From: Mytilus edulis
Lineage: Eukaryota
Length of the DNA: 64,000 nucleotides
NCBI RefSeq assembly: GCF_963676685.1
Contig: NC_092352.1
Coordinates: 46,996,001 to 47,060,000, forward strand
Reading direction: 5' to 3'
Part shown: one piece after another, positions 1-39,200 of the stretch
Numbering within the stretch: position 1 is the first letter of the stretch
Layout of the letters: each line of letters begins with the position of its first letter
Notes under the pieces: generated by a model
What the model saw: only the letters and a program-made list of their open reading frames with translations
Told to the model about the DNA's origin: nothing
Database searches by the model: none
Made by a program: the position numbers and the translations under genes

Positions 1-527
1 TCGAACAGCGGTATACTACTGTTGCCTTTATTTACATGATGCAATGTCAATGGAAGTCTAAAAAGATGTAAAATCTTAAATTATATTACAAGTACAATGT
101 CGTTATAATATCTAATATCTAAAGGATCAAATCAGTAATCATGATGTAAAATTGAAATTTTATAGTTTCAAACCTATATCTTCTTATTGTGAAAAGTTAG
201 ACGCTGCAACAACGAAAAGGATGAATTAACAAGACCGAATGATGGTGTTCTTAATATAGTTCGTTCCGTTATGATTCGAAGTTCATAGAAAAATTTATTT
301 CTTTTGCGATTTCTAGGAGAAAAAGTCTGAAGATATCAAAACAACAACAGCAAACACTAGTATAAGTTTATATTACTAAGGTATTTCAAAACATAGAAGA
401 AAAAACAAGGATATACTATCGGTGTTTGCAAGTAATTAATGTTTAAAGGGTGAACAAATGTTCTGCAGCATATTTATAGAAGTGTTTGGGTAATAAATCA
501 ATTAATATTGTTGTTTTATTACTTTAG

Positions 528-716
528 GAGCTGGTGGATTTACGAACAACAAATGTACAATTAAAAGATAAAGTTTTTCAATTGGAAACAGAGAAGGAGT
601 TCTATATATCTAAACTATTCAATAATCCAGAAATTATGAATATTTTAACAGAGTATTATGGAGCGAATTTAAATAGTTTGTGTGAAGTTAAGGAAGAAGA
701 AATGTTTACATTTTAA
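528..716 (+). CDS. Terminal (leucine-zipper) exon of an ATF3/Fos-type bZIP paralog; upstream exons lie outside the window
   Basis: Acceptor tttag ends at 527, phase 0. ELVDLRTTNVQLKDKVFQLETEKEFYISKLFNNPEIM aligns with the last exon at 24063 (ELKSLIDENRHLKERICCIETEKEFFLSNILRHPVI). Confidence 0.8.
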   Translation, partial: ELVDLRTTNVQLKDKVFQLETEKEFYISKLFNNPEIMNILTEYYGANLNSLCEVKEEEMFTF

Positions 717-819
717 AAACATTAATCAGAATTGCCATTGATAAAATATCTCATATCTAGTCAATATTCCGGAAAACCGGAATACTTCATAAAACATATA
801 TAAGGCTTTTTTTATATAG

Positions 820-1203
820 ACTAGACCGTTGTTTTTCCCGTTTGAATGGTGTTACACTATTAATTTTGGGGCCCTATATAGTTTGTTGTTCGGTGTGAGC
901 CAAGGCTACGTGTTGAAGGCCGTACATTGACCTATAAGTGGTTTACTTTTATAAATTGTTATTTGGATGGAGAGTTGTCTCATTGGCACTCATACCACAT
1001 CTTCCTATATCTATTTATTAATCAATGGGAGATAACATACATGCTAGCTCTAGTAATTTTGGGGCCCTTTATAGCTTGTTGTTCGGTGTGAGCTAAGGCT
1101 CCGTGTTGAAGGCCGTACTTTAACCTATAATGGTTTACTTTTTAAATTGTTATTTGTATGGAGAGTTGTCTCATTGGCACTCACACCACATCTTCCTATA
1201 TCT
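820..1203 (+). repeat. Two adjacent copies of an interspersed repeat
   Basis: taattttggggccc..tatag..ttgttgttcggtgtgagc....ttgtctcattggcactca.accacatcttcctatatct occurs at about 860-1012 and 1054-1203. Related diverged copies lie at about 11180-11370 and 54900-55240, and reversed at about 8590-8680 and 33490-33760. Confidence 0.75.
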
Positions 1204-2032
1204 AGCTAGTGTGCAATAGAACTTACGTTTGATAATGACGAAGAAGATTAGTATCTTCGTACATAATAATTTTTGGAAATTATATACGTCTGTTCCATTG
1301 AAAATTAATAAAGTAAATATCAAAATATCAACACGTCGAAATATCACGACGATTCAACAATTAGAGGGAAAGGTTTCAAACATCTGACACTGTATCTTGA
1401 TCTCACCAAAAAATGGCGTTTCAGCATACAAATTAGAACAAGCACATTTTTACTCAAGATTCACAATGAAATGTTGAATTATGTTAGAATAAACTGAAAG
1501 GTTTTAAACAGGACACATGTCATTGTAAGAAATTAAATAATGACTTGCTGATTAAATATTTCATGACCAAACAACACAATGATACAATTTGTAGAACTAG
1601 AATTTGCTGATAACCTGATAAAGGTCATCGAGTAAAGGAGTCCTGTGTTTTTTTAGAGTCTTTTCCATATGTTAAGAAAGAATTTTGTTTCTGTAATGTG
1701 TTTTGTTTTCCCTTTTTAATGTCTTTCTCCTAAATTGGCTGGTTCTGTTCCATGATTGTGTGTGTAAATGTTTATTCTTATGAGTTTCTGTGCACTCTGC
1801 TGGTTTTTAATCTATAGACAAAAAAGGTTCTCAGCTATTCAGTTTTACTCGATCTTAAGTTCTGTGGATTTTTCTTGCTACAATGTTTTTTTACATTTCA
1901 TATTTTTCTTAAGCATAAGCCCTATAAGGATTAGTGGCGGCTGTTTATTTATGTGGTGCTGATTTAAGGGAATATAAAATGAAAGCTAATTGTTGAATTG
2001 TGATTTAAACTGAAGATTGATATACTAAATTT

Positions 2033-4030
2033 ATCTTATGTTCGGATTATGTGGTGAGACAAACATTCGTTAAGAGTTTCGTGGATTTTTTTTGCCTTGC
2101 CTATGATTGCTGATATCCGTGAGAAGGTGTAATGTTGATAGCACATATTAAGTTATTTCCAGTTATAAATAAAATTAAAGACATGTGTTCCGTTGCTAGT
2201 TTTGTTTATCATGAAGAAGTTTAATTTTTTCTATTTATGGTGGAATTTAATGAAGTTTGGAAATTTATTGATGTCTGAAAAACGGCAGCTCTAGGGGGTA
2301 TCTGAATGTAAACTAAAACATTATTTTCATTTCACAGTAAATACCTTTTAAAAAAATTGTTTTATGATAAATTCCTTATGAAGATCTGGTAAATGGGGTT
2401 AAACGATTATTGTTGTCTAAAAAACAGAACCAAAAGTAGAAAATTTCATTTATAGTTTACAAATAGTTAAATCATATATCATTCAAGGTGGCACGGTAGT
2501 ATTTCCTGGCCCATAAGGGATAATGATAGCCTTTTTAGAATTTTCACCACTTTCTAACACTGCAAAAAATTCTACATTCACAGTTAACTGAAGTACTTTT
2601 ATTTTACTATTCAGAAATGAATTTGAATATGTATCATGACCGTTTACCTAAGGCCACTAGTACTTTTAGGTCTTTTATGGTGCAGTGAATACAAAATTTT
2701 TTAAAATTCTCAAAAATTCATTTTCATCTGTATGTAAAATTATTTCATATTTTTCTACACCTGATTCATCCCTCAGTTTGGGAAAGTATGTTCAGTTGAC
2801 ACTGTATTGTTTGTCCAATCACACTGATTAGATACATTAACCTAAGTAGGGTACACAAAAGAGCAACCTAAATTCTGGAATGCAAATACTACCGTGCCAC
2901 CTCAAATAACCTAGGAAGATGAACTAACGCTAAAAAAATATGCTAAATAAAGAACATGGGAAATCCGTTTTCTAAAAATATAACTACAAATATTATAAGG
3001 AATTAATTTTAACTTCGTTTATGTGTGACCCTGGTAGATGTTTAAAAAAATTTAAGTGCTATTTATTGATGATTACTGAATAATCGTTGCATACCAATGT
3101 ACCTGTTTACTAATTATAAAATGACCACAATTATAGCAATTAACCTTCCAAGGGTTTGTCGGGTGATGTCTAATGTAATAATAAAGATTTTATAGGTAGG
3201 CGTGCATATGTCTTATATTTTTTACTTATTATTCGCTATGCTATACTTTAAACTACTGCTACAATCAAGAAATACCAAATCTTCATAAAACATGTTTTCA
3301 TAGAATATTCTATGATATATCATACACTTTTCTCAAAAACTCAATCAATACGAACTTTGAGAAACATTAAAAATCAAATGTACAAATCAATATAATTATG
3401 GTTACATGATTTGTGAATATTAAAAAATTTCATCGGTAGTTTTAAGTATTGAAAATTCTATAATTCAGTCCTTTCAAAACATCAAGAAATACGGTCTTCG
3501 TGGAAAATTGATATACCAAGTATAAGTAAATATAATTGATCCAGATACCTGATTTAAAAATCTTACAGTTTTTCAAAAGTAGATGTTGAATACCTAAAAG
3601 CGGTTTACACATTATTTTTCGATTTAGAATTAAAAAGAATTTAGAAATATACAATGTGTTAGGCTTATGTATTATAAAGGGAGAGGTTGTTTTAAAAATC
3701 TGGCACAGTCAGTGATAGTTTTTAACTTGCATGTATTTAAGACTGAAGAACTTGTACATATCCAATTTTACTAAAATATTGATAAAAAGGATAGCATGTT
3801 ATCACAACATAGTTTTCTAGGTTGTGTCCTATAATTTGTCTATTTTTCTTTTTCTTTTTTAGCCATGGCGTTGTCGGTGTGTGTTCGATCTATTAGTTAG
3901 ACTGTCCTTTGGTATCTCTCGCCCCTCCTTTATCCCAACGCCCATTTCTGTAAATATGAAAATGTCTGTTTCCGCCAAAATAGAATTCTAAATCAAAATA
4001 ATAGTCATAAATTGGATTGTAATTTATAAA
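2033..4030 (+). repeat. Non-coding segmental duplication, copy 1 (paralog of 4830-6853)
   Basis: Colinear matches run from gttcggattatgtggtgag (2040 vs 4836) through accttccaagggtttgtcgggtga and tcttcgtggaaaattgatata to tctgtttccg.caaaa. Confidence 0.85.
2487..2901. mobile_element. Non-autonomous TIR element (Kolobok-like MITE)
   Basis: TIR ggtggcacggtagtattt / aaatactaccgtgccacc with 4-bp TSD TCAA (2483-2486, 2902-2905). It is absent from the duplicate copy at about 5260 (empty site). Confidence 0.85.
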
Positions 4031-4829
4031 AACAATATATGTATGAGCTACCTGATTGCTAAACGCTTTTTAAAAAGCTGATAGTGTTTTAAAAATAAAA
4101 AAAACCCACATTTGATGAAAATCGATTCTAACTAACTAGAAAGAAATAATTAAAACAATAAACACAACATTGACTCGAAGAAAGTTATCATATGTGGCAA
4201 ATTTTATTCAAAAAGATTAGAGTTTTGAAAAGTACACAAACATTTTGTAAAAACTATTTTAGCTAAAATTAAATAAAAAATTAAAAAGAAGTTTGATTTA
4301 TCATATAACACATGAATGAAATTATGAAATAATGAGAATGCTGCGATCAGTTTAGGAAAGAACATATCTTTGCAATCATGGCAACACCATACTGAGAAGT
4401 TTTATATTAGATACTCTGTAAAGTTTATGCATAAATTTAGATGCGTTGTATATATACATTTACATGACTTATCTTTTTCCGACCGGTTGATCATTCTATT
4501 TATCCCCAACGTGGGGTTCTTTTGTTTTTTTATGCCCCTTATTCAGTAGAATTTTCTTGCTTTCATCTGAAATTTATATTGTGACTTTACGAGAAAAAAA
4601 GAGGCGACCATACCTAATGCCATAGAATGTACAGAACATATCATCTTTATAGATCATTAAAAAAGAAGGATATAGTTTATCTACGTGTTTTCATAAATTA
4701 TTTGAGAAAAAGATTCGAAAACCGAAACTCGTGCAATACGATATATATTCACTCTCGCCAGTGAAATGTTGATTACTAAAAAAGTGCATGCAACAAGCCT
4801 CAACTGAAGGTTTAAAAAACTTAAATATA

Positions 4830-6853
4830 TCTTAAGTTCGGATTATGTGGTGAGGAAAACATTCGTATAGAGTTTCGTTGAACTCGTTGCCTCGCCTATG
4901 ATTGCTGATATCCCTGTAAGGGTGTAATGTTGACAGCACAAAGCCATGTATCAGTCAAATGAAAAAAATGTTTCGTTGGTATTTTTTTCTTTCAGGAAGA
5001 CGCTTTTGTCTATGTTTGGTAGAATTTAATGAATGTTGAGAAATTTTTGATGACTGAAAGAACGACAACCCTTAGCGGTATTTAAATGTTAGCTAAACAC
5101 TATTTTCATGTAACAGTAAAATACGTTTTTTAAACCAATAAATTTTATAATACATTCCTTATAAAGATCTCGTAAGCGGGTTGGAAAGGGTATTTATTTA
5201 AAACAAAAAGTAGGAAAATTTCATTCAGGTCACAATAAGTTATACATGTATCATATATCATTTTTATTATTTAGGAAGATTAGTTGGTCCCGTTAATTTA
5301 ACGTTTGAATCAAATATGCTAAATGAAGAACATAGGAAATCCGTTTTCTAAAAATATAACTACACATCTAACAAGAAATTAATTTTTAACTTCGTTCATG
5401 TGTGACTCAGGTATATGTTTTAAAGAATTTTAAGTGCTATTTATTGCTGATTACTGACAAATTGTTGCAAACCAGTTTTACCAACTATAAAATTACCACA
5501 CATATAGCAATAAACCTTCCAAGGGTTTGTCGGGTGACGTCTAATGTAATAATAAAGTTTGTATACTGGGTAGGCGTACATCAGAAGTGTTTGAATCATA
5601 TGCATCAATTTGCACGTTTTATAATGGCTTGAATTTGTTACTCGTTATTTTCTTTGCTCCACTTTTAACAACTATTACTATCAAGAAATATCAGATTCTT
5701 TCAAAACATGTTTTTAAAGAATATTTTCATGTTATAGGTAATTATAATATTTTTTTAAAACTCAATCAATACGGTGTTCGAGAAATATTTAAGATTAAAT
5801 ACAAGTCAATTTAATTCTGGTTACCTGATTTATGAATCTTTAAGTTTTTCATCGATGAATTTCAAATATCAAAAATTGTATAATTCAGTCTTTTCAAAAA
5901 CTCAAACAATAGAGTCTTCGTGGAAAATTGATATATCAAGTATAAGTAAATATAATTGATCTAGTTACCTGATTTGTAAATCATAAAGTTTTCATAAGTC
6001 AATTTTGAATATTTAAGTCATAAGCACATGAAGAAACGAGTGAGTGGTGAAAAAAAATGTTTATCCAACTCTTGAACCAATGCATGTACATATCATAAAC
6101 GAAGTCCTCTGTGCACGATTTTCTCATTTTTTACGCAAATATATCGTATAATCGTCAATTTTTTTTTCTCTCTGTCTGTAATGATTTAACAAATATGGCT
6201 GCTCATTAAATGCCGTGTTTTGAAGCCGAAGTTTACCGATTGTCACCTTATAGTAAACAAATAACAAAAGGCATAGGCATTGAGCACGTGTTTAACATGT
6301 ACAATCAGATAATTGTTTATTCTAATGAATGTGTATTGCGATCACCGGATTTTTACGAAGAGGATTACGCTCAGGTCACTGTGCATACGGAAAATATGTC
6401 GGCGAATTGCTTCCTCGAAATTAAAGAATTTTCCCCAGAAAAAAGTATATGTACATAAGTTGTATAATGAAAACTATTCATTTAGTTATAAGAAACATAT
6501 GCATATTTTTTGTTAATTTGAGGTTTCTTATGACTTTAAAAAGAGATTAATATTAACTTTGAGTTTCAATTTTAGATTAAAAGAATACAAATATACAATA
6601 AGTAAGTCTAAAGTTCTATAAGGGGAATGGGATGTTTTAGCAAGAAGGTACAGGAAGGGATGATCTTTTAACTTATTTTAGACTTTTTTATTATATATTG
6701 AAGATGTCCAATATAAATCAATACTACTAAAAAATTCATAAACAAGATAACATGTTAGCATGATGTCAATTTCCGTAGATTTAAAATATCTGTTTCCGAC
6801 AAAACATAATTCCATATCAAATTATATTCATATATCGGATTGTTATTTTTAAA
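4830..6853 (+). repeat. Non-coding segmental duplication, copy 2
   Basis: Colinear with 2033-4030; carries its own insertion at 6016-6535. Confidence 0.85.
6016..6535. mobile_element. Probable TTAA-type (Kolobok-like) non-autonomous element
   Basis: Termini agtcataag...cttatgact with TTAA-like flanks; absent from duplication copy 1. Confidence 0.6.
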
Positions 6854-7604
6854 TATTTTTTAAAAAATTCATTGACAAGCAATTACATTAGTCAGTCTGA
6901 TATCACTTATACGTATGTTTCCCTGAGACTTTTAAATATCAATGTATTGCTTTTCATGCAAAATTGCAAGATTTGCCAATACATATACATCTTGAAAGAG
7001 AGTAGTTAACAGTCATATATCAGCAAATACTTTACCCCAAAAGATGTATTTCTAAAAGATTTCATATACAATCCGATATAAACAGTGACACGTTTTAAAT
7101 TCCATGCGTCCGAGACACTTTCATTCAGTTTAAAATTATATGTTTATACTTTCATTAACTTAATTGTCTGTGCCAAGTTTTCATATAATATCAATGTTTT
7201 AATTCATCTGAATAAAGACTTTCAGTTGCGGTCAAATTAAAACAGCATACGATTTCCCGCAATTTTGTATCTGAGAGGCAAATGTTTTATATCTTATAAC
7301 CGAATAATATGATGATACATAAAACAAACATGTACCAATATATATGTGTCTCGTGTTACATGAAGCGTAGTCAATAGGGATATATTAACGTTTATATGCA
7401 AACTCTTAGTACAACACAATATACTTTTGAAATGAATACCATGTACAAGTAATCACAGTTACTATTAAAACATAATAATGATAATTATGATCATGATAGT
7501 AATTTCCTGGAACAGGAAAACATGTGAGGAGATGCAATTAGGATAAACAGGAAGTATAAATGTTCGTCGTTTTTCGGTTTCAACATCTATATGATCAAAG
7601 AAAA

Positions 7605-9382
7605 ATGGCACAATCTCCAATTGGAACTTGTGAAATTTGTGTTCAAGCACCAGGATCACAGTACTGTAAACAATGTCGACAGTACTTTTGTAACAACTGC
7701 AAGATTGCTCATCTGAGATCGAAGATGGCACGTAATCATGTATTTGGGAAAAGAAACGAGACAGGCCAAGAGGAAGAGTTTATATGTAGGCATGTAAATC
7801 GACAACTGTTTATGTGTTTAGATTGCGATTTTCCGTTATGTACGACTTGTCTAGTTGAAAACCACAATGGTCATAACGTGGAAGATTTAGATAAAATATT
7901 TTCATCTTTGCACGACCAAGCATCTAAGGCGATGAAAGGGATTGAAAATGATTTTAAGCGTAAAAGCGGTGGTATGAAAACAATGACAACATCGTATGAG
8001 AAGGAGAGCGAAAAGCTTGAGCGATCGATTTTACTACAAGGAGAAATAATAAAGTCTAGTGTTGACAAAATGGTTAGCACAATCATTGATGACGTTAGGA
8101 AATCTCGCGGGAACGTGAAAAAACATTATCCTACATGTGTCGATGATGCAGTTTCAACTACATGTAAGAAATGGCAACAGCAGTTGGATGAAATTAGACC
8201 CAAAAAAGCAACAGGGAAGACTGTTTTTGAAATTCAGAAACTTCTTGATGAGATAAAAACAATGGAACTTCCAAACCTGCCTGATGCACCTACTGTTAGA
8301 TATAGTGCTAAACCTGTCGACGTAAAAATAATCAAGGATTTACTAGGAGGTGTCAAATTTTTGTAAGTAATTTAACAGATCTTATACTATTTTTTGTTTG
8401 TTTCACATCTCAAAAACGACAAGAGCTTGACATTATATTCATATTTTAAAACTACTTATAACATTCAGAATTGTATACTGCTGTTTCTGTTTACCACGTA
8501 AAAATTGAATAAAGGGCCTCATAAAGTCAGTCAAAATCCGGAAATAAGGGAGGGGAAAATCTCCCAGTCCAATTTGTTCGGAACGGTCTTTAACAATGAG
8601 CCTTGGCTCAAAGCGAACAGCAAGCTATAAAGTGCCCTAAAGAGACATGTAAAACCATTCAAACGAGAAAACTAAATCAATTTAAAATACGAGGCACGAA
8701 AAACACATATGAATCACATCAATAAGCTATTGAATATCAGATTCCTGACTTAGGATAAGTACAAACAAATGCAGCGGGTTTAAACGTTTAAATAGGTAAT
8801 ATGTATATAAACTCATCATAGATGTATGTTTATATATATTTATATATATTTCATCCACAAGAAGAAAATTGTGGCAGCTTTGAAATTCCCGAAAACTAAC
8901 TACGGGTCGCCACAACCGAAACCATTGGATAACTCCAAAGGAGTAATAGCTCTTATATGACTTTTTTTTTTACTATTTGTTGTGCTTAAGTCTATTATCT
9001 TAACGACACTTTTTAAAGTAAAAAGGAAGAAAGAACTGAAAACCATAAAAATGTATAGCCATATAAGTAAATGAAATAATTTGTGTTTTTCAGATCCTTT
9101 TCAAAACTAAACCCAAAATCAAAAGAATTGTTTTTGGTACCTGAAGGGTCTGGGTATGGTTTACGTTTCGTCGGTGGAAAGGATGTCAATGAAGAAGTAT
9201 ACGTGTCATTTGTTTCTTCTGAGGGCCCTGCTGCTAAGGCAGGTCTAAAGCAATTTGATCAAATAATCGCAGTGGATGGAAAACAAACTAAAGGCCTGAC
9301 ACATGACGAAGTCACAAGCATATTTAAGAATGCCAAAGGCAAAGAAAATGTGTCAATAACAATTACGCCTTTTCAGCAGTAG
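7605..9382 (+). CDS. RING-less TRIM-like protein: B-box1, B-box2, coiled coil, C-terminal PDZ (about 348 aa; exons 7605-8362, 9094-9382)
   Basis: B-box1 CEIC..CKQC..CNNCKIAH..H and B-box2 CRH..CLDC..CTTC..HNGH precede a helical region. Donor GTAAGT at 8363 (phase 2) joins acceptor ttttcag ending 9093 in frame (TT+A=Leu). The second exon is a PDZ (GYGLRFVGG..GPAAKAGLKQFDQIIAVDG..LTHDEV). Start taken from homology with the paralog (MAQ). Confidence 0.85.
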
Positions 9383-12300
9383 ATGTGTGTGTAGTGTTAA
9401 TATAGTTGCTGTACTATTTTATTCAAAGCTGAATATAAATTTTCAGCAATGTTTGAATTTATAAATTATTTGTAAAATTCTGAAATAAATTTTCGAAAGC
9501 AAAAATAATAGAACTTTACTTTTATTTTTTCAACTTATTCATTGTTTCATATTCGTAACCGCTTACTTTTGAAATTTAGATATAGAATAAAATAATACAT
9601 TCTTACAAATAAATGCAACTGTAAAGTAGCGAAGCTATATTAGTAACATAGTGTGAAGGCTGCTTCTTCACTTTACCAACTGTATTAGAAAAGAAGTCCA
9701 GAAATGAGAACAAAAATTCTACACCGAAGAACATGAACACATCATTCGATTTAACGACAAGCCTCAGTGTAAACTCTTGTTCCAACACACATGTAGTCGT
9801 ATGGCTTACAACTGTGCAATATAAGGACAAAGCTGATAGAGTACTCGATAGATACAATAAAGGTTCACGAAGGGTAAAAAATGGGCATACTTTGGAGAAT
9901 ATTTGGTACTTTTTAGAAAAGAATTGATATATTTAGCATTTAGACTTTTGAAATAGACCCATTTAAGAACCAAATTGAGACTTTTTTGGTGTTTTATGAT
10001 AAAGTTGATATTTTAGGCCATTTTGTGCCATAAGTGAACCTTGTCCTTTGCTTCATAGATTTCATTGATTTTGTTTGTGATAAGAATAGCAATGTATCAT
10101 ACATTGTTGTATGTGCATCATTAGCACTAAGATTCACTTATCATTCTAATGGTGATTTTGTAAGACACGTTAAGAATCCAATGACATTTTTTGTTATTTG
10201 TTGCCGATTGAGTGTATCCATTGAATGCAATTAAACTACTTGATTAGTTTGATGTCTTGTTACGTTTTTATTCACACAAAAAAGAACTACACAACAAATA
10301 ATTTTATAACAATTTATAAATTAATTCTTTATTTCCTTGTAAAACAAAAACAGAATGGTTGAATTTTTATTAATACTACGATATTAGCACTTGAAAGGTT
10401 AGATACTTTTCTTGTCTTTATGTTCGCTTATTGAATACCTCTTTGTGTTTAAAAAAAAATAATAAGTAAATGGAATTTAAAAGTGATACTTTAGGGAAAA
10501 TGACGATTTGAATAATTGAGGAAAACTGAGCAGACAGAATATCAAATTGAAATATTAGCCAGAAAAAAATACTGATTTACTATAAAGCAGACTAATAAAA
10601 ACGAATAGAAAAGTTGCACAACTAATATACAATATACTTAGTCAAAATAACATGCAAAACCAACAACAGTGAAATTTTTAGCCTATTTTATATTCACTAT
10701 GTAAAAAATATAAGTTCAAAAACTTGAAACGGACGTTGATTCTTATCTTATTTCCTAAGTATTCAACATTGCAATACCAGGAATTAAAACGTAAGGAAAA
10801 TAAAACTTATACAAACAGTCACATCAAGGCTAATTAACACACATTATACACAATGGAAAAAAAACCAATGAAGCTTGAACCCTATTCATATTGACAATAT
10901 CTTTACGTCCTAAGAAATATAAGTCAATACAATTTAAAGAGAAGTGTTTATCAAAATCTTTTCCAGGAGTAATTAAGATAAGTATATCAGTATCGAAATT
11001 CATGGACTTAATGACAACATCAGACTTATTAAAGTTGTAAAAGAACTGTGCACAATCAACGTGCTACATAATAAGTCAAAGCATCATGCAAGAAACACCA
11101 TAAGTAACTTCAGCTTTTCGTTTTACGATGTCATATTTGTTTTCCATCGTTCTGTTCAATCACAATCAGGCCGGAAGTTTTCTCGTTTTAATTGTTTTAC
11201 ATTTGTAATATCGGGGCCTTTTATAGCTGACTCTGTGGTAATGGTTTTCTTCGTTGTTGAATGCATTACGGTTACCCATGATGTTTAATTTTTATGTCAT
11301 TTCGTGTCTGGTGAAGAGTTGTCGCAATACAAATAATACCATAACTTCTCATTTTTATAATTTCTATCTACATTGTCTTTTTTTCAAAACACTTGTTTAT
11401 GTTACCAATAACAACAAACCTCATATTAACATACCATCTGGGAAGGCTTCTTAATACCATGTTAATGTAAATAAAATGTGTTGATTTAAATTAACAAACT
11501 CATAACGCAGTCATCCATAAAAAGGCCCCGAAATTGATTTGTATAAAAATCGGTCATGTTTTGTTCCAATCTTCATCTAAAAATCTCTAACTCATTGTTT
11601 TTTTTTAGGTTGCCGATTAAAATCTGTTTCTATGCTACATGAAGAACAAATAATTTCTATCACATTTTCGTTACCTTTGAGGGCCTTTTAGTTGAAGAAA
11701 ATTTAGGTTTTTGGTTAGTTGGTTAATTGTATGGATATTTCCTATTTAAGAATTGAAACAGAAATATATTTCCTCACTTTTTACAAAAATAGTTCAAATT
11801 TGACGAAGAAGTATTTGAAGGTTTAATGTATGTTGTGATGACTCGTTATCATTTTGGAACAATGTGTCCATTATTTGTTTACTCTTGTTTAGTTCAAAAT
11901 TCAAACAATGTAAAACCACATTAGTTAGTTCAATTCCGAGCAATTTCTATAAGAATAATTCTGAGGAAATTAAAAAAAAATGTCACTTATAACAATGAGA
12001 CCCTCCTATAATTGAGTCCTTTGTAATTGGAAATTATGAGAAATTATTGGCGTATATAAATACAAGATTTTGAATTTAAAGAAAGCATTTCTGATGCTTC
12101 ATATATTTTATAATGTTTTATCATCATGAATCCAGTAAATATTTGTCATCATAATTTCTGGATTGTGTATAACCGAAATAATGTACATTCTTGCATCAAA
12201 ATTGACAATACTGGTATCCTAATTTAGTTAAAACAATATACAGTATCAATGGTCTATATAAAGTGTTCTTCGTTTCAATTTTTCTAACGAATCGAACCGT

Positions 12301-13372
12301 TTTCATTGGCTATAAACTTTATTATGTCGTCTGCTTCTCGTAACGTTAGATCAGTATCATTCTTTACACGAACCTAAAGCATCCAGGAAATTACAGCTTT
12401 TTTTGTTTTAAACGGAAACGAGTAAATGTATTATGTCCTCCTTTATCTTTATATTTATAAACTAATTGTTCTTTATTCTTAAACACAAGTAGTTTGATGT
12501 ATGAAACAACTATTTGAGTTACAACGCTAAAAACCAAAGTAAAACTAGAAGTTTGTTTGTTTTTATTTATTTATTGATGCGAAAAACATCTTTTTCAGTA
12601 TAAAAATATGTTAGCAATGTATACGGTGTAACTTATAAACAGCTTTTCATGAGATCCTTGAGTGTTCAAATATCAATGACTTTTCTGAGGCTAATTCCAA
12701 AAAACAATTCAGACTCACCTAAGTTTATTATTTTTTGAAGTATGCAGTTATAATTTGCAAATAGGTTCATGCATTTCAACTAATAAAAAAACCTTTTATA
12801 AGGGCAACGGTAGTGTACCGTTGTTTAAAAGTAAAAATTGACTAAGATTGTCAGTTTTCCTATCGAAGGTCGGTTGTTTTTTCAGGACACATCGACGTCC
12901 TCCTTCAATAACAATATAGTCGCCACGAAATAACCTTAAAGTGGCACTAAAAACTGGCGTTAAAATACAAACAGTCAATCGATCAAAACACATAAGTCGA
13001 ATGAGAGGAAACATATCCAGGTCACAAAATAAAAAAACTACAAGAGGAAAACAACGAAACAACAGAAACACTGAGGTGCAACATATATGACTGCGTCATT
13101 TGGAATTATTGCGATCACTTGGTGTACGTGTTCGATGTCCGTCGTCGTACGCTTTTTCAAAAAGCTCTTTTTTAACTACTGGAGATCATCATGTAGTGTC
13201 AACCTTATCACACTCAACAAAGTATACAAAGTGAATTTTATTTTCTCACTACGATTATTATATTCATAATAGTATTTACCAGGAAAAAGAAAGTTTGGGA
13301 TGAGATAAAATACACTTATATGAACAGGAAGTTAAAACATTCGACCTGCAACTTCCACATGATAAAAGGAAA

Positions 13373-15409
13373 ATGGCACAATGTCCAGTTGACACCTGTG
13401 AAATTTGTGTTCAAGCACCGGGCTCACAGTACTGTAAACAGTGTCGACAGTATTTCTGCTACAGCTGCAAGACTGCGCATCTAAGATTAAAGATTGCACG
13501 TAACCATGTATTTGGAAAAAGTTTCGAGATTGATCCAGAAGAAGAGTTAAACTTGTTGAAATGTAGTCATGTTGATAAACATGTGTTTATGTGTTTAGAT
13601 TGCGATTTTGCGTTGTGTAAGGGCTGTCTAGTCGAAAACCACAATGGCCATAACGTAGACGATGTGAATAAGATGTTTTCATCTTTCCATCACCAAGCAT
13701 CAACAACAATGAAGGGAATCTTAAGTGATTTCCGGCGTAAAAGCGATAGCATGAAATCATTGACAACATCTTATGAGAAAGAGAGTGAAGCGCTTGAGCG
13801 AGCAATTTTGAATCAAGGTGCAAAAATAAAGTCTAGTGTTGACAAAATGGTGAGCGGAACTATTGTTAACGTTATGAAATCTCGTGAAAACGTGAGAAAA
13901 CATTATCCTAAATGTTTTCAGGATGCAGTTTCAAGTAAATTTAAAACTTGGCTTCAGCAGTTAGCTGAAATTGAACAGAAAGAAGCAACCGAAAAATCTA
14001 TTCACGAAATTCAAAAACTGCACAACGACATGAAAGCAATGGAACTTCCAAACATGCCTGATGTCCCTACGGTTAAATATTGTGCCCAACCAGTCGACGA
14101 AAAAATAATCATGGGTTTACTAGGACGTATCAAATATTTGTAAGTAAAAAGTTATGATATCATAAGAAATAAACATCTCATATATAACTTGTGTTAGAGT
14201 GAACTAAATATGTATATAATCAGTCAGAGTAATGTAAGTCGGGGAAGTATCAAGCTATCAAGTGCATGTTTCCATCCTCTTACAATTCATGATTTTACAT
14301 TTTATCTTCAACTATCTAATATCTATATATATGACAAAATTGTTGGTTTACATTTTGTTGGTAAAATATGACAACAGCGATGCGTGTTTTTCTTATTTGT
14401 CAGGTTTTAATAAAACGATATAAGCCATTTGTTCTGTATGTTCGTTACGTTTTAGCTCATCATGTTCTAAAGCCAATATAAGAAGATGTCATCACTTACA
14501 CATAAAAAAAAATCGACACTACCAAATGATGACTGTTATGTATTTTGTGTATAGGAAAATATGCTAAGTAGATAGAGAAAAACTATAAAAAAAATATGTG
14601 TGGTCTTAGAGTTCAACAGTGTGAAGTATATAAAAGTTATTCTTTGTGATATATAAAAAAAAAAGGCGTTCTTTTATTCAAATATTTAAAAGAATGTTCA
14701 TCAACATTGATATCAAATAAACAAAACTGCATTTCCTTTTTAATATAAGCATATATCTACTATTTTTGGTATATGATTAAAAAAAGGTATTTTTAACATA
14801 TTCTGTTTACGAATATTCATATATAAAAAGAGAATGTTCTTTTTCATAGACCAAACATATCTATTATAAATGTTAATAGATTTTATGAAATTTACGAAAT
14901 TACGAAATTACAACAACCGTCAATGAATTTAAGTAAATACATTATTTTTGTGTTTCAGATCCTATTCCAATCCTATCCCAAAATATAAGGAGTTGATATT
15001 GTTACCCTGTGCGTCTGGGTATGGTTTCAAGTTCATCGGTGGGAAGGATGATGAAGATATTTACGTGTCCGAAGTTTTGCCCAATGGTTCCGCTGCTAAG
15101 GCAGGTCTTAAACAATTGGATAAAATAATCGCAGTGGATGGAAAACAAGTTAATGGCTTGTCTATCCAGGAAGCTGCAGAAATGTTTAAGGATGCGAAAG
15201 GCAACAACGGTGTGTCAATAATAATTGAGCCTTTTCACGTAGCAGATAATTCTTCCAATGGTTCTGCTGCTGTGACAGGTCTCCAAAATTTAGATAAAAC
15301 AATCGTTGAGAATGGAAAACAAGTTGAAAGCTCATCCCGTCATGAAGTTCAAGAAAGTTTTGAGAATGTTGAGGATGTGTCAATAAGAACTGAGCCTTTT
15401 GAGCAGTAG
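13373..15409 (+). CDS. Paralogous B-box/B-box/coiled-coil/PDZ protein with an extra partial PDZ (about 405 aa; exons 13373-14139, 14959-15409)
   Basis: Same architecture and the same phase-2 intron (GTAAGT at 14140; tttcag ending 14958). PDZ: GYGFKFIGG..GSAAKAGLKQLDKIIAVDG. Confidence 0.85.
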
Positions 15410-16652
15410 ATTAGTTGTATAAATGTTTTGTTATAACATTTTTTCCTTGACTGACTGGTCCCATTTATGTATTGGATATTTGTCACTGAAGGTTAAGAAA
15501 CAAACAATCATTTTGTGTCTTAACAATCTGATCATCTTTGCTAGCCAATGTTTATGATGCAGTATCCTACTCTTCATCTTTGGCAGATAAAGTTAAAATT
15601 CGGAACCACGAGGTATTCCTCTTGTAGCATTTCAACTTTCTGCATCCAATAAAAAAAGCCGTGAAAATGTTAAAACAAAATGCATATTATTCACGTAGTG
15701 TTTACCTCCAAAACATAGGACCATATTTAGTATCACTTTCAATGTTCTTACTCAATTTGATTAAAGTTCTTGTGGAAGTTCCTCATGCTATTGTTCAAAT
15801 GTAAACAAATGTTTGAGGTATCTTATTTTACATAGCCAAACTGAAAAGAGTTCAAGTGCTGCCATTGGTAAATAGGTTAATTTGATTTTGTTGGAGTGGT
15901 CCGGATTTCTATCAATCACCAGATGGTGCGACGCTGGATACACAATTCTATCTTAACCCATCAATGACAAAGAGTAGGTAGAATGGATCGTAACACTTGG
16001 CTTTCGAAAAATTAGATCTAATAAGATTTATGAATTACATCAAAGTCTGCAAATATTGTATGAAAAATATTGCTATAAGTAGTTTCGACATTTGTAAAAT
16101 AGAAAAGCAAGAAATCTCCAAAACGGCCTTGTAATTTTTTTCTTATTTTCAAACTTATTTAAGTGAATCTAATGGGTATACATTGCTAAATGTATGAAAT
16201 TAAGAGTATTAAACAAAATTTGTATTTCTGCTAAGTATTTATAAATCGATCCCCCTGAAATAGTAATAGATTCAGTTTTCGTACATTTTTCTAGAAACTT
16301 GTCAATTTTTTCACCTTTTTTATGATGTAGTATGTGACGCCACCCCATCGATCATTGAAATTTTTATCGAAGAGTAAAGACAATTGTATCCAAATATCAT
16401 TTCCATAGAAATGTATGTGGTCGAAGGGTGGTATCACTGTCGTTTGTTTTCAGAAAACTATCATGGCAGAACTCTGCAGCAAAATCAGGATTTAACGAAT
16501 ATCCCTTTATTATGACGTCTTCATGATGTAAGTAATGAAAATATGTTTTTTAATGAAACAATTAGATATTTTTACCTATGTTTTATTCAAGTTTTCACTA
16601 CAACATCTCAGTGAAAGTTTCCGAATATAAGGGCCAAAATTATGAGTTAGTG

Positions 16653-16949: not shown

Positions 16950-18192
16950 CAGTGGCGGATCCAGGGGGTGGTCCCACGGCGCACCGGACCACCCCCATGA
17001 CGAACCTCAAATTTTTTTAAAGTGTCTATTTTTTCAATAACTAGCTAATTAACAAATTAATACTTAAGATTAATCCTTTCGTCGCACTAATTGGTTATGG
17101 ATTACCTGGATACCTAGAGATGTCACAATGATAGAATACGGATCAATGCGTTTCACCTGTATACATCTAATTAAATTGTCAAAACAGCTCGTCAATATGA
17201 AGAAGTTGACTTCTTATTTTGAAAGGTACAGAAAAATACAAATTATTTTTTTTTATTTTTAAGTGAAATTTCTATATATAATTGCATTGTCCAACTAACG
17301 GAGTCTCGGTTTTAAATTTCATTTATGTACATTTTGAAAAAAAAAAAACATTATGAATGAATTAAATTTGTTTATCTATCTCTGTGAGCCCCACCCCTTT
17401 CCCCCAAAATCAACAGCAATTCAAGCACTGAAGTTGGTACCGGCATTTGTACAAAGCGCAACATTTGATGAAATTAAACATTTTGTAGACTTTAACCATA
17501 CTGATTTGCCGAGTCCATCTGCAATGCCGTCCGAACTGCGTTTGTGGCAAAAGACTTGCGAGTCAATGCTTTCAAAACCAGAAACTGTAGCCGGTGCTCT
17601 AAAAGTATGTTCCAAAACAGACTTTCCAAATATTTCTGTTATCTTAAAAATCATAGCTACCATGGGGGTGACGAGTTGCGAATGTGAGCGATCCAATAGT
17701 GAGTTATCACTTTTAAAAACCTACATGAGAACAACTATGGGACAATCGCGTTTAAACGGACTTGCGTTGATGCATGTGCACTACAGTTTGGAACTAAACA
17801 TAAAACAAATTATAGATAACTTTGCAAGGAAACACCCGCGACGCATGATGTTGAATGACCTGATAAACGACTCTTTGTTAAATTAGTAAATTTTGAACAA
17901 TTTTACGTAGAACTATTTTTACCGATTCGGAACATTTTAGCTAAACTTTTTTTACAGCTTGCCTAATTCAGATGACAGTTGCATGTATGTTGTGCTATTT
18001 TAGATTGCAATATATTGTCTATATATATAAGCGTCTTAAATAAAAATCAGTTTTACATGTCTTTAAATTCCTTTACCTAGGAATATGTGCATTGTATGGT
18101 GTTATCCAAATTCATGATCTTCCATAATGTCGAACATACCATTCAATATTTATTTGGGACCATCCCCAATTATTTTTCTGGATCCGCCACTG
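16950..18192 (+). mobile_element. Internally deleted hAT-superfamily DNA transposon with 15-bp TIRs and 5-bp TSD
   Basis: TIR CAGTGGCGGATCCAG (16950) / CTGGATCCGCCACTG (ends 18192); GCAGT on both flanks. Internal ORF encodes a hAT C-terminal dimerisation domain. Confidence 0.9.
17353..17886 (+). pseudogene. C-terminal fragment of a hAT transposase (PRKRIR/THAP12-like dimerisation domain)
   Basis: FPNISVILKIIATMGVTSCECERSNSELSLLKTYMRTTMGQSRLNGLALMHVH..IIDNFARKHPRRM; the N-terminal part of the transposase is missing. Confidence 0.85.
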
Positions 18193-31489: not shown

Positions 31490-32790
31490 TTGTTTCAACT
31501 ATGTACTGGCTTCCGAAGCTACACAAAACACCTTACAAATATAGATTTAATTCGTCTTCAAGCCATTGTTCCACTACTAAATTGTCTATTCTTCTTACCA
31601 GCACACTTGGTACAATTAAAAACCTGATAATAAATTGTTCAAATAAGGCTTTCGAAAATAGTGGAATTAATTACTTTTGGAGTGTACTTGATAAATTGCA
31701 TGCTTATATTGGTGATTTTAAATCTGTTCAAAGTTTTGATTTTTCTACCCTGTATTCCACATTGCCTCACATTCTCATTAAGAAAAAATTCACACACCTA
31801 ATTGAATGGGCATTTAAAAAGTCAGAATGTGAATATATATGTTCAAACTCTTTTAGGTCATTTTTTAGTAGCAATAAACAAAAAAACTATGTCAATTGGA
31901 CATGCTTTGATACTATATATGCCCTTGAATTTTTACTAGATAACATTTTTGTTCGCTTTGGGGATTCCGTATATCGTCCGATTATCGGAATTCCAATGGG
32001 GACTTACTGTGCACCACTTATTGCGGACCTGTTTTTGTATTGCTATGAGTTACAATTTATGACAAAAATAAGCAAAGACCCATCGAAACAACATCTTATA
32101 AACAAATTTAATAATACTTTTAGATATTTGAATGATATTTTGGCTCTCAATAATGACGACACTTCAGTATGTATATTAAAGAAATTTATCCTGTTGAACT
32201 TACTTTAAATAAAGCTAATACTAACAATGACCACTGCCCTTTCCTCGATCTTGATATCTATATCACTAACGGAAAGCTGAATACTAAAATTTATGATAAA
32301 AGAGATGATTTTTCATTTCCTGTCGTTAATTATCCATTTTTAGATGGTGACGTTCCCTTGTCACCATCTTACGGTGTTTATATATCTCAACTTGTACGAT
32401 TCGCTCGTGTATGTAACAATGTTTTAGATTTTAACGAGAGAAATTTATGTATTACTGAAAAATTATTACACCAGGGTTTTCGATATCACAAACTAGTCAA
32501 AACATTTACTAAATTTTATCATCGGTATAAGGACATCATTCGTAAATATAGCTCAACATGCAGACTTCTTATACGTTCAGGTATTTTACATCCAATTTTT
32601 TATGGAAATATTCTTTATGAAGCACAAAGGTGTCAGTATTCACCTCAAAAACTAACAAAACCTATGAATAGACTTATTAAGAAGGGATATAGTTACGAGA
32701 CTGTTGTCAGGTCATTAAAGATTGCATATTTTGGCGTTAATATTGATTCCCTTATAGGGTCTTTGCATCGGAACTAAACACATTTATTAA
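31490..32790 (+). mobile_element. 5'-truncated, inactive Penelope-like retroelement reverse transcriptase
   Basis: YWLPKLHK, SFDFSTLY, GIPMG..APLIADLFL, FRYLND (catalytic YxDD mutated), frameshift near 32160-32170, then YDKRDDF..YGVYISQLVRFAR. No endonuclease seen. Confidence 0.85.
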
Positions 32791-36218: not shown

Positions 36219-39200
36219 ATGATCGAGCCCTCTGACAAAGGACAAAAATACCAGGTAATTACAGAAGAACACCCATCAACCAGTACTAAACAGTTGAAAA
36301 ATAAGAACACAGAAAAAAGTTCAAAAGTTCCACAGAAACGTAAACATAAGAACTCAGATAAAATATCTAAGAGTTCCGACTCTGACGAAGACATAAGTAA
36401 AGCCTATGAAAAGAGTGTAAAAGAGGATAGTTTACTTCCAATTTTAAAGCAGGAGTTGAGACTCAAGATACAAACTAGACGATTAAGTGAAGGTCAAGGA
36501 GAGTTATTACCAGAAACAAAGGAACCAAAATCTTACGAAGTAAGTATTTTGTAAATTACTAATCAACCAAATATCCTAATATCTAGATGAGCGGATATTT
36601 ATTTTTTTATAAACGAGTAAAGATATGACAAACTAGAGGGAAATCACGTCTCAAAAGGTTGAGAGATTAAGAACCGAAGTCTAGGAAAGACAAAAAGCAC
36701 CACGAACATAAGAAAAAAAGACAAAAAAACAGTCTACAATACTCTAACGATTGAACAACCCGTTTTCCACCCAAGTTCTATGGTGAATTAGTATTCTCCG
36801 AAAATATTAGAAGTTCTTGCAATTGTTCATTCTAAAGACTGGAGTGATATTACTTAATATTCCGAATATGTTATGAATTACGGAAGGAATTTAACATCAG
36901 AAGAAAAAAGGAACCAACCATTGTATTGTCGCTGAGCTGCAAGTTTTTTTTGGGGGTGGGGGTGGGGGTATATTTTTTTTTCTAAATGTGTATTTTTTAC
37001 GTAAGGACTCTATTCTTAGGATCTTGGTCATTCTCATTTGAAACATAGTTTGTTCTAATAACTGAAAGTTTTATAATTGAAACGGACGCATTTTCAACAC
37101 AAAGAAATCGTATAACTGGTACAATTTTGTTTTAGCTTACTGAAGAGGAAAAAGAGAAATATAAGCGACGACTAATACAAAACAGAGATTCATTGCGTCG
37201 ATCGAGACAGAAAGACATACGACGCGAGGAAATGTTAAAACAGGTAATTATCATTTGTTATCGACCTTACAGCACTGAGCAGTATTACAATACATGTATG
37301 TTTAAAAAGTGAGTCTTCTCGTTCCCTAATTTGACATATAAATCTGATTTTTTTGGTAAAAAAAAAATGCAGCAAATACTTGACTGTACAATAGATACGA
37401 ATTTAAAGTTTTTAATACAAAATTTTACAAAGTGAAATGCAATGATAATTTCTTTACGACAGGAGAAAATTATTAGTTTTGCAGGCATAATCAATTAAGT
37501 TTGTTATATGATACGGACACGCTTGGTCTTTAGTAAGTGTAAGTGAAAATTATGAACACCAATAGCAGCTGATATTATCTCGATTTACCGTTGGCCTCTT
37601 GTTCTTTTAATATTTTTGTTGTTATCAAGGAAGAAAAGCATGACCTTGTTGGAGGACCATCATTCATCTCCGCATTTTATCGCTCAATACTCAGTTTTCA
37701 GGATTATTATTTGGGAAGTTGTCAATTTCTGTTCGTCTTCTTTATCTCTTGTTAACAATATTGGTTTTTTTTTTATTCCACTTATAGTTTTCGATTGTCA
37801 CATTAAATGCTTCTTTTTTTCTGTTCCGATAATATACGTCTTTAATATTGATGTAGAACATTTTATCAATCTTCAGTTTGTATTATATTTAAAACATTCC
37901 TAGCAGTGACATAAGTGTAACTCTCTATAATGATACATACAAATAAGTACATTACATATTTTGTAGCAATGAATTGTATACTATGAAATGACAATAACAC
38001 TTTAAAGCAAATAACATTGTATAAAAATTACGCAAAGGAATGTTGATTTTACATCTTATAGCATTTTACTTTGTAAATAGATGTCATGAATAAATGCAAC
38101 ATGGTACCTTAACGCCAACATATGATATATATGTATGTATAATAAGTTGTATAAATTAAATCAAAACTGTTTATGATATTTCTTGGATATGAGATAATAC
38201 TTTATATTTCTTAGATATGGGATAATAGCGATTAAGATTATAACACAATGCTGACTGCTGTACCCCAATTTTTAACATTTCTACCTATTATGTCTATTTG
38301 GGTTTTTTCACACATCGTTGTCAATATCATTGATTTTAATGCGACTGTCATACAAGTGAAGGTTTAGTAGCTAAAGACCCAAGTTTAATCCAGCAATTTC
38401 TTCATATGAAAATACCGGTACCAAGTCAGGAATATGACAGTTGTTATCCATTTGATTGATGTGTTTGAGATTTTGATTTTGCCATTTGATTAGAGACTTT
38501 CCAATTTGAATTTTCCCAGAAGTTTCGTATTTTTGTGATTTTATTTTTAATATACATAAAAGTATTACAGACAAGCAGCTTCGATCTCACACAAAACATA
38601 TTGATGATTACTTATACATCTTTGGATTTCAAATGTTTGGCTTTGAGCGTTCCTGATGAAGGTAAATCCAGAAAGTGCGTCGGACGCAAGAAATTATTAA
38701 ACGTGTTGTTTTCAATTTTTTACATCACTGGGTCGATACCTCTGCTGCTGGATATCAGTCCCCGAGGGTGTCATCAGCTCAGTAGTCAGTACTTCGGTAC
38801 TGACATGATTTAACAAACTTTACTAAAATTGTCCGTTTATAAATTTTGAAATTATTAAGAAACTAAGGTTTCAACTCCCTCAGGCAAAGTTGGCTTTACA
38901 TTAATTTGGCTATTTATTTTTGGTATTTTTGACATATAGCTCTTTAACAGTTTCGGTACGTATACATCTTTAGATTTCAAATGTTTGGCTTTGAGCGTTC
39001 CTGATGTAGGAAAATCCAGAAAAGCGCTTCGGACGCAAGAAATTATTAAGCGTGCTGTTTTCAATATCTGTCGACATATTCATGATTAAAATATATTGCA
39101 TGCTGTTTATTTCACAGACTTTTGATACGGAGAGCTCAAAAGAAGAAAGTTTAAAAAGACAAAAGATGCAACTTTTAACAGAAAGAGAAGAATTGAGGAG

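Follow-up and report, generated by a model that had tools for sequence, protein, structure and literature searches.

Introduction

Drosophila Wech, a RING-less protein in which B-box and coiled-coil segments are followed by an NHL domain, is one of the described systems with which the genes reported here can be compared. In TRIM proteins the RBCC motif (a RING with B-box plus coiled-coil segments) often has its coding sequence in one exon (PMC2533329). A further comparison is offered by LNX1/2 and PDZRN3/4, which PMC5679597 describes as E3 ligases that combine a RING with PDZ domains, the latter selecting C-terminal peptide ligands. Here we describe two genes of the mussel Mytilus edulis, A and B, in which a RING-less head of TRIM type (B-box1, B-box2, and coiled coil) is joined to a PDZ tail. 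Both lie in a 64,000-nucleotide stretch of the genome (positions 46,996,001 to 47,060,000 of the forward strand of NC_092352.1, assembly GCF_963676685.1), here called the window, to which coordinates refer unless another sequence is named. An earlier note, made from the DNA letters alone, had proposed the pair as a product of exon shuffling.

The genes resemble those of the TRIM/RBCC family in that B-box1, B-box2, and coiled coil are encoded in one exon, in having a C-terminal domain of the variable kind, and in a predicted antiparallel dimer with a return helix. They differ in lacking the RING and in the identity of the tail: PDZ is absent from two surveys of the TRIM family (PMC3503706 and PMC2533329), and no description of a combined B-box and PDZ architecture was found in the literature searched.

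Two genes with B-boxes, a coiled coil, and a PDZ domain

Gene A comprises positions 7605-8362 and 9094-9382, and gene B positions 13373-14139 and 14959-15409, all on the + strand. The window is AT-rich animal DNA (approximately 31% G+C), and there are no runs of N within positions 1-16000. The first exon of each gene lies in a + strand open reading frame (ORF; 7560-8366 and 13373-14143) of about 255 residues with two B-box matches. These are matches to PF00643 (3.2e-9 and 3.9e-7) and to PF22586. Exon 1 of gene A (7605-8362), delimited by the ORF, Pfam, and the RefSeq model, holds the start codon, B-box1 (7629-7739, residues 9-45), B-box2 (7785-7874, residues 61-90), a coiled coil, and a linker. 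The C-x2-C...H ligand pattern of B-box1 is intact and the domain aligns to B-box1/2 of TRIM28 in structure 6h3a; the zinc-ligand pattern of B-box2 is also intact. The coiled coil and an L2-like return helix (7887-8360, about residues 95-252) form the predicted antiparallel dimer interface; the segment is assigned from a two-copy fold and appears as low-confidence helices in a monomer model. RefSeq places the start of gene A at 7560, 15 codons upstream of 7605, and the interface, which is residues 110-270 in the numbering of the RefSeq protein XP_071130281.1, is thus shifted by +15 relative to a start at 7605. Exon 1 of gene B (13373-14139) has the same layout, with B-box1 at 13397-13507 (residues 9-45) and B-box2 at 13562-13651 (residues 64-93), both with intact ligand patterns, followed by a coiled coil.

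Both head ORFs end at the donor TT|GTAAGT, one codon ahead of their stop codon, which puts the final base of the exon at 8362 in gene A and at 14139 in gene B. Pyrimidine-rich acceptors are found at 9093/9094 in A (...tttttcag|A) and at 14958/14959 in B (...gtttcag|A). The introns so defined (8363-9093, 731 bases, and 14140-14958, 819 bases) run on the + strand from GTAAGT to CAG, conform to the GT-AG rule, and are both in phase 2. In each gene the split codon TT+A (Leu) restores the frame into the PDZ ORF. Exon 2 of gene A (9094-9382) contains a PF00595 match at 9143-9364 (1.3e-13, 51.5 bits) and ends with a stop codon at 9380-9382. Exon 2 of gene B (14959-15409) contains a match at 15014-15202 (8.5e-14, 52.1 bits), after which come part of a second PDZ repeat and the stop codon. 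Both scores exceed the curated cut-off of 23.2 bits. The partial repeat (15230-15406) is a tandem copy that lacks the carboxylate-binding loop and spans the second half of the domain; its identity to the matching part of the first copy (within 15044-15229) is 43%. It predates the split from M. californianus and is more decayed in M. edulis than in the M. californianus and M. coruscus orthologues.

Genes A and B are 67% identical over the head exon and 59% identical over the PDZ exon. Their introns and 1-kb flanks show no detectable similarity and are unalignable. The junction coordinates, intron phase, and domain calls given in the earlier note were exact, and the order that it had proposed (B-box1, B-box2, coiled coil, and PDZ, without RING and joined in frame by a phase-2 intron) is borne out by Pfam, the ligand patterns, and frame restoration. 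Its description of two intact, diverged paralogs also stands, except that they are not a pair: a third member, gene C, was found, making a trio. Overall, A and B are intact genes that arose by tandem duplication and belong, with C, to a Mytilus subfamily of three.

On the evidence of the DNA, A and B are RING-less. Neither head has a RING match in Pfam, the + strand intervals 1-7604 and 9383-13372 contain no ORF with a RING pattern, and the RefSeq models of the two genes also lack the domain. In-frame stops lie 16 codons (A) and 24 codons (B, a TGA) upstream of the conserved start codons, and in every head examined a Met-Ala-Gln start stands directly ahead of B-box1. The genes therefore fall outside TRIM/RBCC in the strict sense, which calls for an N-terminal RING, while they keep the order of B-box1 followed by B-box2. 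They agree with RING-less TRIM-like proteins in having B-boxes and a coiled coil, no RING, and a C-terminal domain.

Public annotation and transcripts

The splice join is not new: gene models from RefSeq and from three other annotations already contain it. Gene A corresponds to XP_071130281.1 (P0007, 363 amino acids) and gene B to XP_071130282.1 (P0023, 405 amino acids), both M. edulis "uncharacterized protein" entries that carry the PDZ-exon translation of the window at 100% identity directly after the head. Orthologues are annotated in four other Mytilus species, with full-length models in M. galloprovincialis, M. coruscus, and M. californianus and N-terminally shorter ones in M. trossulus. 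The names in use are "uncharacterized protein", "PDZ domain-containing protein" (UniRef, M. coruscus), and "TIF1-beta-like"; the genes are thus annotated yet uncharacterised. Some RefSeq models (P0008 and P0024 of M. trossulus and P0032 of M. californianus) are short of B-box1 or more, which probably reflects an annotation or assembly problem rather than real loss. Two models from outside RefSeq, P0018 (M. edulis) and P0016 (M. coruscus), over-join gene B to a bZIP gene downstream.

Direct RNA support for the spliced genes is thin. Read mapping over 8300-14299, a region that excluded most of gene A exon 1 and all of the gene B PDZ exon and that was subject to filters that drop records, gave near-zero exon depth and listed no exon-exon joint. 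One or two stranded RNA reads lie on the end of gene A exon 1 and on its PDZ exon, with the first mate on the - strand. Among the listed members of the two protein clusters (all of those in the gene A cluster and 15 of 27 in the gene B cluster), the Logan-derived ORFs are unspliced forms of 268, 282, and 99-103 amino acids, and none has the 348-408 amino acids of a spliced form. The word shares of 0.39-0.52 over 7500-9500 in runs marked "RNA?", considered as a possible exon-only signal, were not confirmed by read mapping and are not used as evidence.

These results would be explained if the B-box and PDZ ORFs were separate units or decaying remnants, and the joins repeated annotation artefacts. 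That some pipelines over-join at this locus, fusing gene B with the bZIP gene, is in keeping with such an explanation. However, the PDZ ORFs have no conserved start codon and begin a few codons past a strong acceptor, all three paralogues recover the reading frame across the junction, conservation extends to the PDZ exon and not to the intron, and the trees of heads and tails are congruent (see below). Moreover, a 393-nucleotide contig of run X5 tracks gene B to exactly 14139, the last base before the donor, and then departs from the genome, its remaining 74 letters being unaligned, and seven independent annotations agree on the join. We consider it highly improbable that these are not single genes, and on the strength of the restored frame, the conservation pattern, the trees, and the concordant annotations we hold the splice to be real with high confidence.

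Distribution of the architecture

Word-indexed searches of 5.8 billion protein clusters returned proteins that span both parts only from Mytilus. The same was true when 1.84 billion representatives were scanned in full by HMMER, the query being the 348-amino-acid M. galloprovincialis orthologue. The other matches among the best 150 were B-box/coiled-coil or multi-PDZ proteins, and the ten that were scanned with Pfam had one domain type, never both. The ESM Atlas gave no usable match. As far as the searches reach, the B-box/coiled-coil/PDZ order thus appears confined to Mytilus; they were similarity searches and not a true architecture search, and an unrelated fusion of low similarity could escape them. 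The silence of the TRIM surveys on PDZ, together with the finding of no non-Mytilus protein with both parts, agrees with the earlier view that no recognised TRIM class carries this tail.

A probable single fusion within a large head family

A six-frame search of the M. edulis genome identified the third member. Gene C (C9:61087033-61090163, on the - strand; positions 4028-7164 of locus L018) has the same B-box/coiled-coil/PDZ order and lies 14 Mb from A and B on the same chromosome. Its head, at 61.089-61.090 Mb, is 44% identical, and its PDZ exon, 2.1 kb downstream of the head, is 35% identical. The junction (TG|GTAAGT ... CAG|T) is in phase 2 and falls at the same aligned position as in A and B. 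RefSeq protein P0182 (345 amino acids), named "transcription intermediary factor 1-beta-like", reads exactly as the predicted gene C junction. Its M. californianus orthologue is P0032, and the PDZ domain of the gene C orthologue scores 54 bits, against the same cut-off.

A maximum-likelihood tree that includes the 34 nearest PDZ domains groups the PDZ domains of the three genes, sampled in four species, in a single clade (support 96/91). A tree of 35 heads likewise unites the heads of the three genes (Shimodaira-Hasegawa-like approximate likelihood ratio test, SH-aLRT, 100). Both trees have the topology ((A,B),C), which points to one fusion event. The head tree also places the A/B split before the divergence of M. 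californianus and M. edulis. One fusion before the split of A, B, and C, followed by duplication, would explain the trees.

The heads of the three genes belong to a much larger family. At least 150 head exons were scored in this genome (from 1106 first-look candidates), each a single exon of about 250 amino acids. Arrays are found mostly on C8, C11, and C12, and tandem arrays of head exons lie at 73.6-74.5 and 85.6-89.8 Mb of C8, at 44.4-44.7 and 77.9-79.0 Mb of C11, and at 35.9-36.8 and 41.1-41.6 Mb of C12. Most array copies are intact; a few have one or two in-frame stops. All nine of the non-PDZ heads examined have the Met-Ala-Gln start and a phase-2 donor (AG|GTAAAT or AA|GTAAGT), and their exons end at the same aligned position. 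Genes A, B, and C fall within the family tree and have the head length, start, and donor of the family, so that the start, the head of about 250 amino acids, and the position of the phase-2 donor are common to PDZ and non-PDZ members. The subfamily differs in that the PDZ exon follows only these three heads, and in that the PDZ clade is at most 34% identical to other heads.

What follows the head varies within the family. The tails of the annotated relatives inspected (P0034, P0038, and P0040) are short and carry a CxxC knuckle; P0050 has a tail of about 350 amino acids with no Pfam match, and one family member is named "wech-like" by RefSeq. The expectation that bivalve B-box proteins usually end in NHL does not hold for the nearest relatives inspected in this genome, which carry the short CxxC tails instead. 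The PDZ tail is thus a further case in which the family has swapped tails at its conserved phase-2 boundary. Being one of several swapped tails makes the finding less singular, and at the same time it supports exon shuffling. As had been proposed, exon shuffling explains the origin best, given the phase-2 boundary common to the nine non-PDZ heads and the clade of A, B, and C in both trees.

The source of the exon is another matter. The best sequence matches of the tail exon are PSD-95 (1e-11) and an InaD-like protein (5e-11). Outside the family, the closest PDZ domains are those of the NHERF3/PDZK1 type, which form a weakly supported sister group (76/58), together with the final PDZ of MPDZ and with MAGI1. 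The search for a donor that the earlier note had suggested named none, the outside matches being only 30-38% identical, and no donor gene is identifiable in this genome, where the best non-family PDZ is 35-38% identical. The top match of the PDZ exon in the Protein Data Bank, TAL effector 3ugm, was rejected as an artefact of summed repeats, since each stretch has an E-value above 100.

The PDZ pocket and its constraint

The carboxylate-binding loop reads GYGL in A, GYGF in B, and GFGF in C, and aligns to the GLGF of PSD-95 PDZ3. The His of the gene A motif T-H-D-E-V aligns with the alphaB1 His of PSD-95 PDZ3, a residue that selects Ser/Thr at ligand position -2. All A orthologues have His at this position, and C has Met or Asn there. 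In B it is Ile in M. edulis, M. galloprovincialis, and M. trossulus, and His in M. californianus. With pocket positions that vary between them, the paralogues probably recognise different ligands.

The ratio of nonsynonymous to synonymous substitution rates (dN/dS) between A and B, named earlier as a check on the genes, is below 1 for both exons (0.30 in the head, 0.63 in the PDZ exon; dS is approximately 0.5-0.6). Among orthologues the PDZ domain is as conserved as the head, with identities of 89-100% in A and 72-98% in B; between A and B it is about 60%. Conservation within orthologues and difference between paralogues fit diverged ligand specificity better than decay. On the other side, relaxed constraint would also be consistent with the PDZ value of 0.63 and with the decay of the second repeat in B.

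Proposed function

By sequence, the only solved relatives of the head are in the B-box1-B-box2 region of TRIM28/TIF1-beta (2.4e-6). A two-copy fold of residues 16-363 of XP_071130281.1 gave an interaction prediction score from aligned errors (ipSAE) of 0.60, versus 0.01 for the best control, a prediction and not a measurement. The mark of 0.60 is reached by 21 of 30 solved same-chain pairs and by none of 23 single chains (among eukaryotes, by 17 of 29 pairs and none of 30 single chains). At least 74% of contacts are common to the dimer runs, and the predicted local distance difference test (pLDDT) score of the partner is at least 72. The predicted contacts are antiparallel and symmetric about residue 165 of XP_071130281.1, and residues 229-232 pack on residues 117-124 of the partner, a layout that is that of solved TRIM coiled coils. 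A caveat is that the model may have scored the dimer well through having memorised solved TRIM coiled coils; the result indicates likeness and not binding. Among the functional proposals of the earlier note, only the oligomerising one has such model support, as a homodimer. The AlphaFold2 monomer, made from an alignment of nine rows, is also poor (mean pLDDT 50.6).

Taken together, these observations suggest the following course of events and mode of action. A RING-less, single-exon head with a phase-2 donor would have acquired a PDZ tail exon once, before A, B, and C split, and later duplications would have given rise to C, now 14 Mb away, and to the A/B tandem pair. In the protein, the coiled coil would form an antiparallel homodimeric rod with the return helix packed back on the partner, as in TRIM proteins, and a homodimer would hold two PDZ domains. 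Each of these has a canonical carboxylate-binding loop and would be expected to recognise peptide motifs at C-termini. Assembly of a higher order may come about through B-box2, as TRIM biology would suggest. With no RING the proteins have no ligase domain of their own, which makes a bivalent adaptor or scaffold that clusters PDZ ligands the most likely role. On balance, we think it reasonably probable that each protein forms an antiparallel dimer without catalytic activity, which exposes two PDZ domains and gathers proteins into clusters by their C-termini.

Alternatively, along the lines of the earlier note, the proteins could serve the ubiquitin pathway as adaptors that co-assemble with RING-bearing TRIM relatives and hand over PDZ-bound substrates, or they could act as dominant-negative partners of family members. 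RING-less TRIM-like proteins are known, as are hetero-oligomers among close TRIMs. The TRIM-like antiparallel coiled coil, as modelled, would suit such a role, and the genome has hundreds of related heads that might in principle assemble together. However, every close head relative that was inspected is itself RING-less, with the Met-Ala-Gln start, leaving no obvious RING partner within the family. In addition, pairing of TRIM coiled coils is usually between close paralogues, and the PDZ-clade heads are at most 34% identical to the others. We regard this role as unlikely.

The size of the family and the variety of its tails raise another possibility, that the PDZ domain reads C-terminal motifs of pathogens and the head multimerises, forming an innate-immune sensor or decoy by analogy with TRIM5 and TRIMCyp. 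The family is hugely expanded and its tails are swapped at a conserved phase-2 intron, the PDZ pocket differs between the paralogues, and between A and B the PDZ exon has changed more rapidly than the head (0.63 versus 0.30). A bivalve-expanded B-box orthogroup has the Gene Ontology term "interferon-beta production" (PMC8382680). In opposition to these points, the PDZ subfamily is small (three genes) and stable, with 89-100% conservation between orthologues, which is not an arms-race pattern, and dN/dS is below 1. Such a sensor is, in our estimation, very unlikely. A broader proposal would make the head exon a general multimerising chassis that is coupled through one phase-2 intron to swappable tails. 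The PDZ trio would then be sensors or decoys for C-terminal motifs of host or pathogen, each paralogue tuned to a different motif class, and would constitute the first TRIM-like PDZ class. We mention it as a speculative idea with little probability of being right as a whole. The clustering dimer remains the function that we prefer.

Genomic neighborhood

Interspersed short repeats occur at 8500-8700, 9900-10050, 11100-11300, and 12700-12900, the first being a highly repeated element inside the intron of gene A and the others lying in the spacer between A and B. In transcriptome-like runs their word depth is tens to hundreds per bin and thousands at single positions. Many loose ends fall at 10049/10050 and 12836/12872, and the repeats are probably mobile elements expressed from many loci. 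Downstream of gene B, an ORF at 17353-17886 on the + strand matches the hAT transposase C-terminal dimerisation domain (PF05699, 9.3e-9) and is probably a hAT remnant. Two adjacent + strand ORFs at 31501-32777 (235 and 202 amino acids) recur nearly identically beside a B-box head on C8 (positions 6202-7253 of locus L020); this repeated element has no significant Pfam match.

An ATF3-like bZIP gene (ORF at approximately 36219-36554; P0020, P0029, and P0017) adjoins the B-box/PDZ pair. The adjacency is indicated by consecutive accessions in M. edulis, M. galloprovincialis, and M. trossulus and by the read-through models P0018 and P0016. The bZIP proteins were considered as PDZ ligands and rejected, as their C-termini (...YVQN and ...MKAA) are not classical PDZ-binding motifs.

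Comparison with known systems

If the proteins are made and act as proposed, PDZ joins the short list of tails recruited by the TRIM-type B-box/coiled-coil module. The locus would then offer a clean, datable case of tail-exon swapping at a conserved intron phase, inside a gene expansion that ranks among the largest lineage-specific ones of bivalves. A rod-shaped dimer bearing two PDZ domains would give a simple and testable means of bringing proteins together through their C-termini, and the three paralogues, whose pocket residues differ, would serve as a natural experiment on how specificity changes. For the present the practical significance is limited: the genes have public annotation already and, as far as the data reach, are confined to Mytilus.

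LNX1/2 and PDZRN3/4 also couple a ubiquitin-related zinc-finger module to PDZ, and the analogy is functional only. They have a catalytic RING and two to four PDZ domains and neither B-boxes nor a TRIM-type coiled coil, whereas gene A has one PDZ and gene B one and a partial one. No sequence relationship to that group appears among the named matches. The scaffold PDZ domains (PSD-95/DLG PDZ3, InaD-like/PATJ, GRIP1, MPDZ, NHERF3/PDZK1, and MAGI1) are like the mussel tail in the GLGF-type loop and, for gene A, in the alphaB1 His. At 30-38% identity they are distant, and the mussel proteins place a single PDZ on a coiled-coil dimeriser, unlike the PDZ chains of the scaffold proteins.

A further parallel is the TRIM5-CypA fusion TRIMCyp, mentioned in PMC2533329, in which a B-box/coiled-coil head likewise gained a new ligand-binding tail, through a genomic insertion or shuffle at the boundary between head and tail. 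In TRIMCyp the tail arrived by retrotransposition and the RING was kept. In the mussel genes the tail is an ordinary spliced exon, and its acquisition is an old event that precedes the split of A, B, and C.

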